A stretch of 64,000 nt of DNA from Haliotis rubra (GCF_003918875.1 NW_025765958.1:310001-374000); one strand, 5' to 3'; shown: positions 1,919 through 59,380, numbered from the stretch's first letter. The notes: generated from the sequence alone by a model not told the origin. Numbers and translations: made by a program.

Positions 1919-2385
1919 GGGTGGTTTCGATAAGGCATATTCCAAATCAAACGTCCAATGTCAAATGTGTTCATTCGATCGCATTCTTCGTGCAGGGCAG
2001 CGCCAAAGTTAGTCACCAGGATTCCGCCCACACCCTTACTGGGCCACCCCCAAAACAATCGTTCTGCCTAGCGTTAAGGTTACGTCGACAATACGTGTAA
2101 CTGCGACTGTCAAGGAAACTCAGAGCAAACCTTTGTTCATCCGAAAACATAACAGAGTAAATAGTTTGTCACATAACATGAAGGCCATCCAGGCAACAAT
2201 ATATAGAAACGCTTGACACTATATCTTGTTCACAGATAACAGTATAACAGTCTTTACGACAAGATCCTATAAAAATAGATATCAGCCTAACAGGCAAGGT
2301 AGTGTCATCTATCTAATTACCCCGTCACAGAAGATGTCGATAACAAAACTTTTATATTGTGAGGTACTATCAAAGCTTTCTATGT

Positions 2386-2522
2386 GATTTAAATTTTGTA
2401 ATAAGACACATGTATATAGAGTACATCGAGTCTTGTTGCTGCGAATGAATCATCAATAATATTATCGCAGCAACAAGACGTGACGTACTCTATATACATG
2501 TCTAATTACAAAATTTAAATCA
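2386..2522. repeat. Imperfect inverted repeat (~58-bp arms, 20-bp spacer)
   Basis: 2386-2444 is the reverse complement of 2465-2522 apart from small differences. Confidence 0.9.
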
Positions 2523-3168
2523 GCATTGTTATTAACACTGTTTTGTGCTCATTTACGCATTTGCTCTCTTTTTGTCACGCGTAAATACATAATTTATTTC
2601 ATCAATGTCTCTCTGCATAAGAAAATTATATAGGGTGATATGCATTTTATTACGTGATTGAGACAATGCTTCTGTCGCAGAAACAGGCTATCCAAGCATA
2701 AATACCAATCACACCTTCCGTGGAGACTGATTAAACTCTTACGCTAACATGCCTTTATTGAACCCACCGATCTTTTGAACCACTAAGTTAATTTATTTTC
2801 ATCTTGACGAATAATCGAAAGTACCTAATTAACCCACCTGCAACCAGGATGCAGCCTATTACTTCGTCTTGTCATCATACTTAAGGCGTCTGGTGCTCAC
2901 CCCAGCAACAATGGCGAACGATGGTAAATGATGCATTTATTGTACAAGGCGTTGTCTAGTGTCTCTCATGATGTGGAAGATTAGACTTCGTGGTGATAAA
3001 GCACTCACAGTTTCTATCAAGTAAGAGGAAACGAATTTAGATTGGAGTACTAGGCGACATTTGAAAAATAGAGCTATCCCTCGATATTAGTGTCTCAGAT
3101 TGATGCCATTTTAGGGCAGGGAACACTCACCGTTTCGCTAACACCTTGTATAAACAATATTTGATAGT

Positions 3169-3497
3169 GCGGTGAGGTGAGGTGAAATTGGGTTTAACGT
3201 CGTGAGTGAGAATATTTCGCTCACATGACGACGTGCATGCGTGTGTATGTGTATGTGTGGCTGCTTGTACTAGACCAGACTGAAGCTGGTTTTATAGTGC
3301 TAGCCCACTGAGATACCATGTCGCAGTGAAGCATGAATACCCCACTCAGACACTTTATACTGACTCCGAGGCGACCAGTCCTTGTTGTACCCATTAATGC
3401 CGAGCGCCAGGCAGGGACCAAAAGTACAATATTTTAACGTCTTTTGGTATGACGCGGTCGGGGATCGAACCCGCGACCTTCCGATCTCCGGGCGGAC
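3169..3497 (-). mobile_element. tRNA-headed SINE, family A (Meta/MESC-like central domain), slightly 5'-truncated
   Basis: B-box ggttcgatccc, central gtcataccaaaagacgttaaaa and a (CACCT)n tail. TSD atatttga(t/a)agt at 3157-3168 and 3498-3509. Empty site at about 13992 in copy B. Confidence 0.9.
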
Positions 3498-3891
3498 ATA
3501 TTTGAAAGTAATTTGTAGACACATAATATACTCTTGATATACTTCGGAATAGTACAAACGACTGTTTTTAGAGACATCTAATGAATATGAAATAAAATCG
3601 TCTTGAACGATTGACATTTAATGGAGTCATAAATTTAAGTGTAATGTATCTAGAACAATGTGCGATTCATATCTCAGCTTGATGTACGCAACTTAAAAGT
3701 TTTCCTGTGTCCTGTCATTCGTCTTCAATTTTCTTCAATTTAAAACTGATTTGATATAATTTTGTATCTAATGTTAGGTACCTATGTAATACCGTTTTGT
3801 AACCTATTATTGATAACACAAGAACGAGGAACGTGGCATTTAAATGTGGACTTGAGATCTCTGAGAACCTCTTTTGAATTCGTAATATTAA

Positions 3892-3984
3892 CTCTTGCTT
3901 GACAACGGTATAAGAATCCATACCGAAACGTCGCATCATATATAATAAAAGAAGTTGTTATCCATAAACAATCTTACTTTCTTA
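3892..3984 (+). mobile_element. 93-bp Penelope-like pLTR-derived insertion carrying a hammerhead motif
   Basis: Perfect 12-bp TSD tcgtaatattaa at 3880-3891 and 3985-3996. Absent from the paralogous site at about 14351-14365. AATAAA lies downstream of the ribozyme motif. Confidence 0.85.
3896..3935 (+). ncRNA. Minimal type I hammerhead ribozyme (U3-A8 variant)
   Basis: tgc-TTGACAA-c-ggtat[aagaatcc]atacc-GAAA-cGTC-gca. This gives stem I, the core, a 5-bp stem II and a palindromic ACGT stem III, with predicted cleavage after C3932. Confidence 0.8.
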
Positions 3985-6210
3985 TCGTAATATTAAGACA
4001 AAAACTGTTTGCTTTAGTTGGAAATCTAAAAGATCCAAGAGCTATCTAATATTAATTTAAGTATATATGCAAACGTTCTTAAAGCCCCTCACATTTCAGA
4101 GTCCTTGAGAACCTTGAAACGGAAACCAATCGAGACAATGCGGTATGTTAATCAATAACAATGCAGCTCACATTATAGATCGTCTTTGTGACAGAAAATC
4201 TCCGTTTTACATCTGTCATATCCTTGAACTACTACAAACCAGCAAAATATATTTCCCGAAAATAATACGTCTTTACTAATTGTATCTTGGTAAGGAGGAT
4301 CATAAGTCAATCCTAGTACTTAGGGAGTTTCTGTATTGATCCTTGTAGAAAGCACTGGTTTAGCTGTCCCAGTCGCGATTTTATGCAGGCTTTCGTGTCG
4401 TAACTAGAATATCACTGAGGCGTAGACAATAAAAGTAGAAACCATGTTATAATGATGTGTATCCATGTTATTATTTAAGGCAGATCGATAGCACCCGAGC
4501 TTCACACATGTAATGGGTGATATCTGATGGAAGACAAGTGGTCTCATTTCTCTTGATATAGAAAAGGCAACGTTTCATGTAAACAGTTGGCATTAGTAGA
4601 TGTATACTCAGCACACATAGAATGGAATGCAACACTGAAAACACGTGCAAACATTATATAGTTTCGTTCGTTAAGCGTCACATTGCCACTGTTAGATATG
4701 GGTAAATGTAACTGGTGGTGAAGACTGATTGTCTTGTTTACGCCACCAGCATAAGTAATCATGCTGTCTCACGGCAACAGATCATCATGTAAGGACATTG
4801 TCAGAACCTATTAATCCCCGCTGTCACTATACGACAACACACAGACAGCACGGAATATCTAAAATCACCCCACTGGTAGTGACAAGGAATGCACACAGAC
4901 GCGTAAACATTTTAAAAAACTGTGAACGTCTGCCTCTCAAGTTTACAACCTCATTGTTCCTAAGTATGTAAATATGTCTTGAATAGCTGCGCCTTCAGGT
5001 AGTAGTTTGGGGTTGCCAGACAGATGTTTCTTGTCAGCTTACAATATTGTCATACTGCTACATAGTTCTGACAACATCTAATTGTCCTCACACCAGACAA
5101 CCTAACACCAAGATGTATTCAGCTGTTAGCTACTGACAGACATAGGACGCAAGCCAAACTATATTTTTTGCGTCATGAGTCTACAAATAAGTTATCATGC
5201 TTCGTTACGTCATCTATCACCATATATTTTAGGGCTGTTAAGCTGAACCCGAAGTCGAATATGGTTCGAATTTGATACGGTCACCAAATTTGGTACCAGG
5301 ATTTTAATGACGTAAGGTTAAGTGTTTGAATCCATTTAGCATATATAATCAGGTTGCGCAAAGACTCAAGACAAACCAAAGCCATTATTCGGTTGATCAA
5401 CATGGCAAATGATGAGTAAATAGGTTTCAATTATTTAACATTGGTGAATCAATTTTTGGCTTCAGTCAAGATTCCAATTAATGGGTTTTTTAAATTGCAC
5501 AGAAAGGCAGCATTTTATGATACAACTAAGATCGTGTCGTTTTAGAAATTTAAACCTTCGCGATATATTTCATATGTATTGACCTTTTGTAACCAAACGT
5601 GTTGCAGTACGTACTGAATGAATCGAATCCACTCCTCTTCAGTTCATGAAAGCTTTATTGTCAAAGTCGATTTAGGAATAATACTTATTATCAACTATTT
5701 TATCTTATGAGATACTATGTATGCGCTTTTTATTCCCCCGGCATGTAATGCGGGGCATATAGTCAACGCCTCGTCTGTCCTTCCGTCCGTAAGTAATCAT
5801 TTTGTTTCCGGAACAGAACGTAAAGTGTTGCATTTTGCTATTTGCATATTTTTTGTTATTTTTATTTTTCTTGGTTGCCATGGAAACCGTTCATTATCTT
5901 TCAACAAAACTTGGCAGATATATCAAACAAACCCTAAAGTGGTACCTTATGCTATTTACAGATTTTTAATTTTTATTTTTCTTGGTTGCCATGGAAACGT
6001 TTTGGACGTAGTCTCAAAAGGGAAGTGTGTGCTTCGTTTCCGGAGCACAACTCGAAAACCGTTCAATATCTTTCCACAAGACTTGGCAGATATATCAACC
6101 AGATCTTGAAGTGTTGCCTTTTACTATTTGCAGATGTTTGTCATTTACATTTGTCATGATTTCCATGGAAACGATGGAACTTATTCTAAAAAAATCAAGT
6201 CGGACTTTAA

Positions 6211-13112: not shown

Positions 13113-15850
13113 TCCAATGTTCACAAATAACAGTATAAACGTGTTCACGTGAAGATCCCATAAACATCATATATCAGCATAACAGGCAGGGTAGTGTCAT
13201 CTATCTTATTGTCCTCTCTCTTAAGAAGGTAATTTCAAAACTTTTATATTGTAAGATATTATCAAGCTTTCTTGGCATATATATTGATGATTCCTTGGCA
13301 GGAACATGACGGACTCTATATGGATGTGTGTAATTACAAATTTAAATCGTACATTGTTAGAAACATTGGTTTATGCTCATTTATGCATTTGCTCTCTTTA
13401 TGTGTAAGTCGATGTTAGAAATACAAATACATTTCATCAATAACTCCTTGCATAAAGAAACGATATAGACATATATGCATTTTATTACGTGAGTGAGACA
13501 ATGCTTCTTTCGCAGAAACAGGCTATCCAAGCATAAATACCAGTCATACCTTCTGTGGAGACTGATAAACTCTTACGCTAACATGCCTTTATTGAACCCA
13601 CCGATCTTTTGAACCACTAAGTTAATTTCTTTTCATCTTGACGAATAGTCTAAAGAACCAAATTGACCCACCTGCAACCAGGATGCAGCCTATTACTTCG
13701 TCTTGTCATCATACTTAAGGCGGCTGGTGCTCACTCCAGTAACAATGGCGAACGACGGTAAATGATGCATTTATTGTACAAGGCGTTGTCTAGTGTCTCT
13801 CGTGATTTTAAAGATTAGACTTCGTGGTGGTAAAGCACTCACAGTTTCTATCAAGTAAGAGGAAGCGAATTAGCTTGTGGAGTACTATGGGGACATTTGA
13901 AAAAATATAACTATCCCTCAATATTAGTCTTAGATTGATGCCATTGTAGGGCAGGAAACACCCACTGTTTCGCTAACACCTTGTATAAACAATATTTGAA
14001 AGTGATATATAAGCACATACTCATAATATGCTTTGGAATAGTACAACGACTGTTGTGTTTGAGACGTCTTATGAATATGAATGAAATTGTCTTGAACGAT
14101 TGACATTTAATGGAGTCATAAATTTAAGTGTAAAGTATCTAGAACAATGTGTGATTCATGTTTCAGCTTGATTTAGAAATTGCCCTGTGTCCTTTTTGTG
14201 AATAGTGTTGTTACTAGTTTCAGCATCTGTTAATTTAATACTGATTTTGTATCAAATGTTAAGTACCTATGTAATATGGTTTTGTAACCTGATACATCAA
14301 CGAAGACATTTAAATGTGGAATTGACTTCTCTGAAAATCTATTGTGCAATTGCAATATTAAGGCAAACAAACAATTATTGCTTCAGTTGGGAATTTTAAA
14401 ATAATGTCAAACGGTCTTTAAGTCCCCTCACATTTCTGTATCTATATAATTCTTAGAGAACCTTAAAACGGAAACCAATCGAGACATGTTATTTGTGCAT
14501 AATTACAATACAGCTCACATTATAGATCGTCTTAGTGACAGACAATCTCTGTTTAACATCTGTGATATCCGTGAAATACTAAGTATCCTACTACTTAGAG
14601 AGTTCCTTTATTGATCATTGCAGAAAGCATTCGTTCAGCTGTCCAAGTCGCGATTTTATGCAGGCTTTCGTGTCGTAACTAGAATATCCCTGAGGCGTAG
14701 ACAATGATTGTAAAAACCATGTTATAAATGATGTGTATCAATGTTATTATTTAAGGCAGATCGATAGCACCCGAGCTTCACACATGTAATAGGTGATATC
14801 TGATGGAAGACTAGTGGTCTCATTTCTCTTGATATAGAAAAGGCAACGTTTCATGTAAACAGTTGGCATTAGTAGATGTATACCCAGTACACATAGAATG
14901 GAATGCAACACTGAAAACACGTGCATACATTATATAGTTTCGTTCGTTAAGCGTCACATTGCCACTGTTAGATATGGGTAAATGTAACTGGTGGTGAAGA
15001 CTGATTGTCTTGTTTACGCCACCAGCATAAGTAATCATGCCGTCTCACGGCAAAAGATCATCATGTAAGGACATTGTCAGAACCTTTTAATCCTCGCTGT
15101 CACTAGACTACAACACACAGACAGCACGGAATATCTACAATCACCCCACTGGTAGTGACAAGGAATGCACACAGTCGCGTAAACATAAACAATGTGAACG
15201 CCTGCCTCTCATGTTTACAACCTCATTATTCCTATGTAAATACGTCTTGAAAAACTGCTCCTTCGCGCAAAAGGTTTGGGGTTGCCAGACAGATGTGTTT
15301 TGTCAGCTTACAATATTGACAAACTGCTACATTGTTCTCACAACGTCTAATTGTCCTCACACTAGACAACATAACATCAAGATGTATTTAGCTGTTAGCT
15401 ACTAATTGACATAGAACGCAAGTCAAACTATCAGTTTCCGTCATGAATCCACAAACAAGCGATCATGATTCGTTGCGTCATATTAAGACGTATCTATCAA
15501 CATATATTTTATGGCTGTTAAGCTGAACCTGAAGTAGGATATGGTTTGTTTGAACGGTCACCAGATTTCTTTCATATCTATTTAGATATTTTGATACCAA
15601 ACGTGTTGCCGTAGATACTGAATGAAACGAATCTACTCCTCTTCAATTTATGAAAGCTTTCTTGTCAAAGTCGACCTGGGTATTACACTGATTACCCATT
15701 ATTTATTATTCTTAGGCACTGCGTGTGCCCTGTGTTTGATCTGGTATGCTCCTTATTTGATAGTGATTCATGTCGTTTTTATGTTCCTATTCCATTTGAT
15801 GTTTTAACGTAAACGTTCTGCTTGAAGGTTGCTCATGGAGTCCCTGGAAA

Positions 15851-17823: not shown

Positions 17824-18185
17824 CAGTGAGGTGAGGTGAGGTGAATTTGGGTTTAACGTCGTGCTTGAGAATATTTCGCTCATATGACGACGTGCATGCG
17901 TGTGTATGTGTATGTGCGGCTGCTTATACTAGTACAGACTGAAGCTGGTTTTATAGTGCTAGCCCACTGAGATACCATGCCGCAGTGAAGCATGAATACC
18001 CCACTCAGACACAATATATTGACTCCGAGCCGACCAGTCCTTGTTGTACCCATTAAAGCCGAGCGCCAGACAGGGACCAACAAGTACCATATTTTAACGT
18101 CTTTTGGTATGACGCGGCCGGGATCGAACCCCCGACCTTCCACTCTCCGGGCGGACGCTCTAACCACTACACCACGGAGGCGGTC
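17824..18185 (-). mobile_element. Full-length SINE, family A
   Basis: tRNA head, Meta-like domain and (CACCT)n tail. TSD tggtctcag at 17815-17823 and 18186-18194. Confidence 0.92.
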
Positions 18186-20431: not shown

Positions 20432-20784
20432 GACCGCCTCCATGGTGTAGTGGTTAGAGCGTCCGCCCGGAGAGCGGAAGGTCGCGGGTTCGATCCCCGA
20501 CCGCGTCATACCAAAAGACGTTAAAATATGGTACTTGCTGGTTCCCGCCTTGCGCTCGGCATTAATGGGTACAACAAGGACTGGTCGGCTCGGAGTCAGT
20601 ATAATGTGTCTTATTTGGGTAATCATGCTTCACTGCGGCATGGTATCTCAGTGGGCTAGCACTATAAAACCAGCTTCAGTCTGGGCTAGTACAAGCAGCC
20701 GCACATACACGTACACACGCATGCACGTCGTCATATGAGCGAAATATTCTCAAGCACGACGTTAAACCCAATTTCACCTCACCT
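20432..20784 (+). mobile_element. Full-length SINE, family A
   Basis: Head gaccgcctccatggtgtagtggttagagc...ggttcgatccc. TSD cactgt(a/t)acatgt at 20419-20431 and 20785-20797. Confidence 0.92.
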
Positions 20785-20961
20785 CACTGTTACATGTCCC
20801 TATCAGCACATGATGCCACCAAACAAATTGTTCTTAAAACAATACCTTAAATTATATATGCATGTCACTAGCTGTACATTGGCAGAAACACGACAAAAAC
20901 ATTTCCATAATCCTCGGGAATATTAGTTTCAAGTCGTGCCCATTGAGCGAATCCGACGATA

Positions 20962-48673: not shown

Positions 48674-49090
48674 TAGTGTATGCCAATGTGAATGAGTCTG
48701 TTTCGTTGAACGCATTTTAACAGCCTTCCAGTGACGTCACGACGTGCCACGATCAGCTTAATGTGTTCCTGGATTCAGACTTTTGTCACTTTGGTGAAAC
48801 CCATTTGAAGCTTAATCGGGAAGTACCACGATTCGAACACACCATTATACGTTTCTGACGTGCCGAAAGGAAGCAAAATGCAGCGCCCCGGACGACAAGA
48901 CGCCTCTTGCTCATCCGTTCGACGGACCGAATCACATTCATTGAGCCATCTAAACCATTTGAGCTTAAAACGTTTGTGTTAGCTTCAGCCTGGATTTCAA
49001 GACTAACTTACCAGATTTCGTATTGTCCATTTGATTTACATGTGTACAAATGGAGGATATATTAGATTATGTCAAGCATAAAGTAATCAT

Positions 49091-49304
49091 TATAATATAG
49101 AACAATTTTTATGGATAACAACTTCTTTATTTCGTGAGTGCGACGTTTCGATGCAGATTCTTGTACCGTTGTCAAGCAAGAGTGTCAAGCAACAACGGTA
49201 CAAGAATCTGTATCAAACGTCGCACTCACGAAATATAGAAGTTGTTATCCATAAAGAATGTTCTATATTGTAAATCTCAACTTCTAAAATGCCACTCAAA
49301 CAAG
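49091..49304. mobile_element. Penelope-like inverted pLTR pair with hammerhead motif
   Basis: Arms 49091-49172 and 49192-49272 are inverted. 13-bp TSD ataaagtaatcat at 49078-49090 and 49305-49317. Homologous to 3892-3984. Confidence 0.85.
49139..49178 (-). ncRNA. Minimal hammerhead ribozyme (U3-A8 variant)
   Basis: Minus strand reads tgc-TTGACAA-c-ggtaca[agaatc]tgcatc-GAAA-cGTC-gca. Stem II has one G-U pair and one mismatch. Confidence 0.7.
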
Positions 49305-51565
49305 ATAAAGTAATCATCACTTTGCCTTCAGCCGTGCAATTTCGCAAGGCTATGTTATACGTGTCCGCCATTGTAAATATTTATATCTGTCATAGTACTA
49401 GGTTCATGAGACGGGACATACAAATAGATGGAATAAAACCGGCAGGTCCATATAATTGCCGCACTTGACGATTACAGGGATCAAATGTTCATGATAATGC
49501 TCAGTGGTGAACTTTGTCGTTGGCTATTATACTCGACCGCCATCAGTACATTGGACAGTGTAATGCCTAGAATTCGTTGAAAGGTGAGAACACAATGACT
49601 TTCCCACAGTTCCTGCAACACTATAGTAAACGTCAGAGTTCTCTATCACTTCGGTCATCCCGATCACATTCAGCTGAGATATTGTGAAAGAAAAGAAAAA
49701 TACAGTACAAATGATCTTAATTGGACACGCCCCTGAAACTGAAAAGGATAAGCATTTACCTCTCTTTGAAGAATATCACATGGTTAACACACCTACTTGT
49801 CCATGTGACATATATACTAAATGTAAGTTAACTGTTGATGCAGATACTTTCGAAGAATCTTAACAACGATTAGACGTGGTTCATGCTTCAGAAAAGAGTG
49901 ATGATCTTTTATTGATTTCCGCTTAAGTTGAGTCAAGAACATGACACAGGAATTTGAATGTGATCCTGTGTTTAAATGAAAACAAGTGAAACTTTGGTAA
50001 GGCTGTCCATAATTTTTTCCCCGAGTTTCCCATCCACAGCCCGAATTCATATTTCGATGTGAAATTCTAGAAAGTTAACTGATGTCAGTATGATTCGCCG
50101 CTATGTAAATGTATGCCCCGATGCGTTGTGATGATACTCTTGCACACTCATAAAGAACAGGTCATCTTAAAATTTACTCAACTCTGCATGTATTTAAACA
50201 GATAGACGGATAGGTAGAATTTGTTATGTAATCTCCTCCATACTATAATACATATTGTGTATACAATTATATATTTATTCAAGCAGCCAGTAATAGGAAT
50301 TCATAACTATGCAGTATAGTTATACTTATTCGGAGTTTTGGATATTCATAAAGTTTACACAGGAACAGTCAGATGCATTTATAGTCTTTTTAGACTTCGT
50401 TTACATCAGATACATGTGTATGATCCCTTGCATATATTCAACTGCATGTTCAATTTTGCCAAATCCTTTGTCAGAAACAGGCCACAGTGCGGAGAGCTTC
50501 TGGATGTTTGGGTTTCCAGAATCAAATTGTGACGTGTTTGATAGGAATTTCGCAATGGCTGGATGACGACAGTACAGCACCTTGAGGCACTCGCTCCTAG
50601 CATCACTGCATTTATCGTCAACCTCGGCACCACATGACCTCCATCTTCCCGGAGAGCTGTGTTACTAATGTGTCAGTAAATGCAATAGGTTCATCATTGG
50701 GAGCGTTGGTTTACGCGCGTAAATTGGGGAATCAGCTCCCTTGGCAAGAGGTGTAACAACCAACCCACACAAAACACAAGACATGAGTAAATAAACGTGA
50801 GTTTTTTGGGCAGCCGCCAAATCACACACATAATTCTCCAGGATATATTCAATCAAGTTTATAGCAAGGTACAACCATGTACACGTATATGTACACGTAT
50901 ACCGGGAACGGCAATCCTATAAAAGCATGACAAAGGACTCATTAGTTACGATATATATCAAGGTGCACAATGTAATCGGCAGTTTACGTATCATTGAATA
51001 GAGCACACCAGACACACTGATAAATGACCCGAGTAGACAGTCGCACAAGACATACAGCACACAGCTTATATATTCAAATGTAGTAAGATTAAATCATAAT
51101 GGAAGTGATCTATTATACACAATTATGTTAATATTTGAGAAACACACCAGGACCTTGACACGTTCCACATAAACCCCACTTAAACCCGGTTGTGTCAAGG
51201 GTCGTAACAGTTACGGTACGATGGATTAAACGTAAGACATAAGAGCATTATTGTAAAGATTTTAATAAGGTAGAAGATAAACAATGAGTCATTAGACAGT
51301 CACAGAAGGATTTGTGACTGTATCGTCCGTTTTATGTACCTAGCCTACCTGTTTTAGCTGTCACAGATTAAACTGACGATCAGGCTATTGTGAACATAGG
51401 ATTATGTCATTTAGTTTGACGGAAGCATCGGGGTTAAATGTGTCTAATGGATGACCATTTGAGAATATGCTACGAATGGATATGTGGCATTCGCGTGAAT
51501 TGACCAACGTGAAATAAAAACATACAATACAGACAAACACGTTGCACCTCGGCTCTGTCAGCTTA

Positions 51566-58838: not shown

Positions 58839-59010
58839 CCTTTGAGAGGCATTTTAGAAATTGTGAAGATGAAAGAAAACTAAGTTCTATGGATAGTCTA
58901 CTTCTTTATTGCAATAAGTGCGACGTTTCGGTGTAGGTACTAACACCGTTATCAAGCAAGTGATCGTTATCAATAAAGAAAGTGACTATCCATAGAACTT
59001 AGCTTTCCTT
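58839..59010 (-). mobile_element. Penelope-like pLTR-derived insertion with hammerhead motif and partial inverted arm
   Basis: TSD caaa(a/t)acaccat at 58827-58838 and 59011-59022. Empty paralogous site at 57369-57380. The end tttgag.ggcattttagaa is shared with 49091-49304. Confidence 0.85.
58919..58958 (-). ncRNA. Minimal hammerhead ribozyme (U3-A8 variant)
   Basis: Minus strand reads tgc-TTGATAA-c-ggtgt[tagtacct]acacc-GAAA-cGTC-gca. Perfect 5-bp stem II with a compensatory pair relative to 3896-3935. Confidence 0.82.
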
Positions 59011-59380
59011 CAAATACACCATATGTGCACGAGCGTTTCAAACTATGAACTAAGAACTTATGCATACAAAATGCTATTTAGAAAGTAACACATATTATAT
59101 TTGGGATTACACTTTCTCAGTAAAGTACAGATTCTAGTACTTTTGGACCGGGATTCGAACTCACACCCTCAGAGTCAGGCACCTAATGGCAAGAACACAA
59201 CTGGCGATATATGTGGCATTCGTATTAGCAGTTGTCGAGTTGTGATGACTAAACTGTAGTCACAACTGTAACTCAAGAAAACATTTACCCTTGATTTAAA
59301 AAAAATTAAAAATCAGATTTGACACCTATCTGGAACACACCGAATAAAACCGGCTAACCTGTTTGCAAGTTAAGAACCAG

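Follow-up and report, generated by a model that had tools for sequence, protein, structure and literature searches.

The window, a 64,000-nt stretch of the Haliotis rubra genome, contains a 93-bp segment flanked by perfect 12-bp target site duplications (TSDs) [Table 1]. The segment is located within a collinear duplication, in which positions 2227-5670 (3.4 kb) correspond to 13118-15674 with approximately 80-90% identity. The 93 bp are missing from the paralogous copy, where the site is uninterrupted. Pairwise alignment shows that the paralogous sequence, ttgcaatattaa, matches the TSD, tcgtaatattaa, at 10 of 12 positions. The initial annotation of this locus had described a retro-insertion with a TSD and a preserved empty site. 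This is what is observed, with the 12-mer at both edges of the segment and the 93 bp absent from the paralog.

An alternative without any insertion is slippage between two 12-bp direct repeats, by which 105 bp would have been deleted from the paralog. The direct repeats themselves, and nothing else, point to such a deletion. Against it, the 93 bp represent a dispersed repeat with hundreds of near-identical copies that are found at unrelated sites and have their own TSDs. A first look at the 1.38-Gb genome gave at least 1383 candidates for the 93-mer, of which 40 were scored, with identities of 98-100%. This copy number refutes a deletion in the paralog and leaves it with practically no probability.

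The duplication also differs by an unrelated repeat of approximately 330 bp, found in the window at 3166-3497, 17825-18156 and 20461-20787 (minus strand) with 93-94% identity. It is present in the copy of the duplication that carries the 93 bp and absent from the other, and represents a second post-duplication insertion.

Table 1. Features of the window, with positions counted from its first letter (PLE, Penelope-like element)
Feature	Position	Strand	Basis or remark
Left TSD, tcgtaatattaa	3880-3891	.	Identical 12-mer recurs at 3985-3996; single-copy in paralog
93-bp segment, very probable PLE 3' terminal piece, family 1, tail-less form ending ...CTTACTTTCTTA	3892-3984	+	Copy identity, upstream homology
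Minimal type I hammerhead motif	3896-3935	+	Direct reading; descriptor scan; covariation; consensus features of PMC4209133
Helix I, tgc/gca	3896-3898 with 3933-3935	+	3 bp
Core U3-A9, TTGACAA	3899-3905	+	Direct reading
Extra C after A9	3906	+	Direct reading
Helix II, GGTAT/ATACC	3907-3911 with 3920-3924	+	5 bp
GAAA, G12-A15.1	3925-3928	+	Direct reading
Palindromic CG	3929-3930	+	Part of helix III palindrome ACGU
U16.1	3931	+	Direct reading
C17; predicted cleavage after C3932	3932	+	Direct reading
Block conserved among three PLE families, starts with AATAAA (3944-3949)	3944-3968	+	Invariant alignment columns
Right TSD, tcgtaatattaa	3985-3996	.	Same 12-mer as 3880-3891
Empty paralogous site, ttgcaatattaa	14350-14361	.	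Pairwise alignment; collinear duplication
Third PLE family, head-to-head inverted pair of termini	49078-49317	.	Helix II GGUAC/GUAUC, U3-A8
Second PLE family terminus, fold-back copy with tail	58861-59012	-	Descriptor scan; alignment
Second family hammerhead, helix II GGUGU/ACACC, U3-A8	58922-58955	-	Descriptor scan

The hammerhead motif and its covariation

The string tgc-TTGACAA-c-GGTAT/ATACC-GAAA-CG-TC followed by gca, on which the initial annotation had based a hammerhead ribozyme, is present within the 93 bp as quoted. It has the core that is typical of PLEs, UUGACAA ... GAAA-CG-UC, with positions 3 and 8 paired, a G10.1-C11.1 pair (G3907-C3924) and the palindromic C3929-G3930. The other families agree with it in the unpaired nucleotide after A9, in this pair and in the palindrome. 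A relaxed descriptor of the minimal hammerhead finds two matches in the window, compared with a mean of 0.04 in shuffled sequences. The Rfam hammerhead models, including RF00163 (Hammerhead_1), show no match in positions 3600-4300 even at E <= 10. That standard searches miss the motif had been anticipated, and the Rfam result is expected because the motif is without helix III.

Secondary structure modeling of the monomer with ViennaRNA gives a minimum-energy fold of -9.5 kcal/mol, in which G5-C7 are paired with G16.2-C17 and C9a with G12. A hammerhead-compatible fold of the monomer has -5.5 kcal/mol, i.e., it is 4 kcal/mol worse. The best fold of the monomer is predicted to be inactive, with G5-C7 and G12 sequestered.

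Two other PLE families are found in the window [Table 1]. The inverted pair of the third family is located inside one 13-bp TSD (ATAAAGTAATCAT, 49078-49090 and 49305-49317), and G12 is lost in one of its arms. The helix II sequences of the three families in the window are GGUAU/AUACC, GGUGU/ACACC and GGUAC/GUAUC, with two of the five pairs double-changed. Other paired variants of helix II found genome-wide are GACAU/AUGUC, GAUAC/GUAUC, GGGACC/GGUCUC, GGAGU/ACUCC and GGGGC/GCCCC. Covariation here, in helix II as in the 3/8 pair, is expressed in copy counts and not in independent events, and the core was fixed by the search patterns.

The 3/8 pair was counted genome-wide in one fixed pattern frame (N3-TGA-N-N8-A-N-G, 12-20 nt, CGAAACGTC). 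There are 6248 copies with U3/A8 and 905 with C3/G8, compared with 166 with C3/A8 and 163 with U3/G8; reversed-pattern controls give 4-25 matches. This predominance of the paired states (6248 + 905) over the mixed states (166 + 163) upholds the earlier proposal that U3-A8 is a compensated pair. The mixed-class copies that were listed share their helix II sequences with the large families. The mixed copies look like decay products of single mutations, with the exception of one tandem array. Selection acts on the core and on its 3-8 pair in the amplified lineages. A related PLE from a metagenome, with 53% protein identity, has a mini-hammerhead of the C3-G8 type, which precedes its ATG by 75 nt. 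On comparison of these sequences, the interpretation of the motif as a hammerhead is well supported.

Genome-wide, the extra nucleotide that follows A9 also differs between the two types: the C3-G8 families have A there, and the U3-A8 families mostly C.

The probable parent element

In most copies the homology continues 5' of the 93 bp, for up to approximately 1 kb, and is truncated at many points. The sequence upstream of the 93 bp in other copies encodes a GIY-YIG-type motif that begins with GVVYK(V/I). The longest copy examined, L061, has an open frame of 882 codons with a match to RVT_1 (E = 2.8e-8) and a GIY-YIG motif with the CCHH cysteines and histidines. The C-terminus shows a weak match to NCBIfam TIGR01453, the group I intron GIY-YIG endonuclease (E = 0.0012). 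The GIY-YIG family in Pfam has no match to this C-terminal domain, even at E <= 10, and a PDB sequence search gives generic reverse transcriptase (RT) matches and nothing more specific. These tests for RT and GIY-YIG pertain to the long copy of the family and not to the 93 bp themselves. The family-1 hammerhead string is found in identical form 52 bp past the stop of the L061 read-through frame. L061 is itself 5'-truncated, and an inverted 5'-truncated copy is positioned head-to-head upstream of it.

The L061 protein has its relatives among uncharacterised RT proteins from Haliotis rufescens, H. asinina, H. rubra, Patella, a chiton, echinoderms, lamprey, a viper, insects, rotifers and flatworms. 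The domains of these homologues are RVT_1, DUF8422 and HTH_animal, with PF01541 in one of them. Thus a partner with RT and GIY-YIG domains and with exactly this terminus, as had been envisaged, is present in the genome in the form of the L061 ORF, with its RVT_1 and TIGR01453 matches and its GIY-YIG motif.

The 5' starts of the copies span positions 1 to 903 of a 995-bp reference, where window position 3892 corresponds to reference position 903. Many of the family-1 copies are adjacent inverted pairs that are 5'-truncated and joined head-to-head, and simple insertions have TSDs of 10-16 bp. There are two alternative fixed 3' ends, one at ...CTTACTTTCTTA, which is the form of the window copy, and the other 35 bp further. 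The 35-bp tail is present on 31 of 63 sampled ends. An optional tail of 30-40 bp has been reported as a signature unique to PLEs and ascribed to two internal start sites of reverse transcription (PMC8557442, PMC11167929).

The tail contains an ATG and the first six codons, MPIKQI (e.g., L028:1594-1630). The N-termini of full-length homologues are similar (MPLKQFIRR.HGD..., MPFKEFIR... and MPLKEY...), and the truncated L061 frame resumes at ...HGDVAINTINSL. By these properties, the tail spans the start of the ORF and the two start sites of reverse transcription straddle the ATG. With the tail in this position, the 93 bp represent the last part of the leader or pLTR, and in the intact element the hammerhead is located approximately 70 nt upstream of the ATG of the ORF.

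Between the hammerhead and the start site of reverse transcription is a block, AAUAAAGAAGU.G..UAUCCAUA, that is common to the three families. The AATAAA with which it starts had been taken for a poly(A) signal. No poly(A) tail is found on any family-1 copy examined, and the hexamer, which is conserved together with the rest of this longer block, is located in the leader upstream of the ATG; thus polyadenylation is not singled out as its role.

The 93 bp are very likely a dead-on-arrival retrocopy of the 3' terminal (pLTR or leader) segment of a PLE. This PLE would be young and abundant, of the canonical type with a C-terminal GIY-YIG domain, and would bear a PLE mini-hammerhead. Between the two possibilities offered in the initial annotation, the solo pLTR fragment is the correct one. 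The other, a tiny non-autonomous element, does not agree with the upstream homology that the copies have in common, which extends into the ORF and has many truncation points. The short length and the TSD would also be properties of a SINE, a MITE or the 3' end of a LINE. However, terminal inverted repeats are absent, as is any tail that is A-rich or of microsatellite type. The upstream partner encodes a GIY-YIG and not an APE or REL endonuclease, and the optional tail and the inverted copies are specific to PLEs. A SINE in particular was rejected, as no copy has an A-rich or simple-repeat tail and the 5' part is PLE coding sequence. The absence of terminal inverted repeats and tails, together with the GIY-YIG partner, therefore excludes these identities, and the probability that remains for them is very small.

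One copy (L021, about 1089-1476) has a minisatellite directly upstream of the hammerhead, in which a segment of approximately 30 bp (…gtctgttctgtgctgtagtacttcactcttg) is repeated in at least 12 tandem units.

Comparison with described hammerheads

Minimal hammerheads in the pLTRs of metazoan PLEs were described in 2014 by Cervera and de la Pena (PMC4209133). According to that description, helix I is short, one nucleotide between A9 and G10.1 is unpaired, the G10.1-C11.1 pair is conserved, 15.2-16.2 is palindromic and loop III is absent. The U3-A8 covariant was reported with about 1300 matches in Schistosoma mansoni, and the motifs were mostly solitary, which was ascribed to truncated PLEs, with nearby pairs on opposite strands (PMC4209133). 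Minimal hammerheads of PLEs were also treated by Lunse et al. 2017, as cited in PMC6765202.

The features of the window motif match this list, in agreement with its initial assignment to the minimal type I hammerheads of Penelope-like elements, in which helix III is palindromic. The novelty that had been implied is not borne out, as PMC4209133 already contains the U3-A8 variant, the additional nucleotide that follows A9 and the solitary motifs of truncated PLEs. Every feature that had appeared to be variant is on the published list, and therefore the kind is already known. The present motif is a further family, in a gastropod.

The similarity to the metazoan PLE motifs, including the U3-A8 motif of Cercyon in S. 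mansoni, comprises the type I topology, the palindromic helix III, the unpaired nucleotide between A9 and G10.1, the G10.1-C11.1 pair, the short helix I and the replacement of C3-G8 by U3-A8. Both occur in thousands of mostly solitary copies from truncated PLEs and in close inverted pairs. The differences are the gastropod host, a helix II of 5 bp instead of 7-8 bp, a helix I of only 3 bp, and the predominance of U3-A8 motifs over the canonical type, which is about 7 to 1 in this genome.

The Poseidon PLE of Anolis carolinensis (PAc, PMC11167929) is similar in having an RT with a C-terminal GIY-YIG domain, AT-rich targets, a hammerhead near the start of the ORF, and two starts of reverse transcription approximately 35 nt apart at the junction of pLTR and ORF, which give the optional tail. 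The PAc ORF begins inside helix II, whereas here the ATG is approximately 70 nt downstream of the cut site, in the tail; the PAc core is C3-G8 and the present one U3-A8. The Penelope element of Drosophila virilis has a motif with a bulge in helix II, a palindromic insertion of 2 nt and an intron that ends at helix I, none of which was seen here.

Animal non-LTR retrozymes (PMC7229834; preprint 10.64898/2026.07.22.740005) are also short hammerhead units that are related to PLE pLTRs. Retrozymes consist of units of 170-400 bp that are repeated in tandem and give rise to circular RNAs, whereas the window copy stands alone between its TSDs, with no head-to-tail tandem units. The likeness to retrozymes is confined to a 128-bp array on a contig outside the window (C115, about 241777-298856). 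This tandem array has a period of approximately 128 bp, and in every unit there is a mini-hammerhead whose core shows a U3/G8 wobble (TTGACGA-C-GGCAT...). In the PLE leader, the stretch from helix I through the end of the tail has this same length, and the array looks like a retrozyme-like satellite that was derived from a PLE pLTR.

Proposed origin and function

As inferred from the biology of PLEs (PMC11167929), the RT-endonuclease of the element would have nicked an AT-rich site. Reverse transcription would have started at the first of the two fixed internal sites on the PLE RNA and produced the tail-less 3' end. Approximately 93 nt would have been copied, and staggered cuts would have resulted in the 12-bp TSD. 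In the intact element, cleavage after C17 is expected to depend on the pairing of two copies via ACGU, i.e., on a dimer in tandem or multimeric transcripts. The solitary window copy should be inert, and any activity of the motif in master copies is inferred to be that of a dimer formed on multimeric transcripts.

Cleavage by the motif in vivo is considered somewhat more likely than not, given the selection on the core and on the 3-8 pair. The low activities in vitro and the findings in Anolis count against it. Single PLE mini-hammerheads showed no cleavage in vitro and dimers were weak (PMC4209133), and with the reconstituted Anolis PLE cleavage was dispensable for insertion in vitro and no RNA-seq ends were found at the cut site (PMC11167929). 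The same data would fit a motif whose RNA structure is maintained for another role, e.g., in recognition by the RT or endonuclease, as a promoter or as a leader, and which does not work as a ribozyme in vivo. The greater stability of the competing monomer fold is in line with such a role, as is the position of the preferred 5' ends of short copies, which precede the motif and do not coincide with the cut site. However, the conserved positions are exactly those of the hammerhead catalytic core. The 3/8 pair is maintained by a double change in amplified families, while the mixed states are scattered copies with single mutations and one satellite array. In addition, fungal PLEs have efficiently cleaving hammerheads at the same place (PMC4209133). 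A purely structural role is regarded as rather unlikely.

The 5' ends of the copies are not evenly distributed. Starts at reference positions 896-903 are found in 6 of 30 unbiased loci, with the window copy included, compared with 7 in the preceding 96 bp. These positions are 0-7 nt upstream of helix I, and many of the ends are fold-back junctions. The three families have the same 5' boundary just upstream of helix I. Family-1 hammerhead copies number at least 822 genome-wide (<= 2 mismatches), and counts of 30-mers are 822 for positions 907-936, 348 for 880-909 and 262 for 850-879, where the figure of 822 is inflated in that the pattern also catches sister subfamilies one mismatch away. One or two copies that start at the predicted cleavage site (reference position 944) were seen, and such 52-bp copies rank low in the searches used.

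The units of 93-128 bp, from helix I to the first or second RT start, may, with rather low probability, form a discrete class and not be random truncations; they would be either solo pLTRs in complete form or cDNAs produced by run-off on the PLE leader. Their 5' boundary would then record the 5' end of uncleaved PLE template RNA, and the 128-bp unit may have seeded the C115 array. The excess of starts at 896-903, the drop in segment counts from 822 to 348 and then only to 262, the boundary common to three families and the 128-bp period of the array are all consistent with this. On the other hand, sister subfamilies make the drop look larger than it is, and the fold-back junctions may simply reflect a favoured point of template switching. 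The upstream homology in most copies shows the 3-kb element to be the source of the family. Copies of 93-128 bp that originated as run-off products primed from the upstream start site, or as complete solo pLTRs, would imply templates that were uncut by the hammerhead. If true, the boundary would be a genomic read-out of the ends of PLE RNA, with templates mostly uncut, and the array would be a mollusc example of a PLE leader that became a retrozyme or satellite.

With the 93 bp as a very likely terminal retrocopy of a PLE, the present findings leave current understanding unchanged. The fixed 3' ends, the tail with its ATG and the hot spot at which 5' ends cluster fit the model of internal initiation that has been put forward for PLEs. 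For annotation, the thousands of short hammerhead repeats in this genome are PLE termini and not new ribozyme elements, and Rfam scans miss them. They also constitute a natural test set for the 3-8 pair, in which two compensated states have been amplified to hundreds or thousands of copies and the mixed states appear only as decay products.
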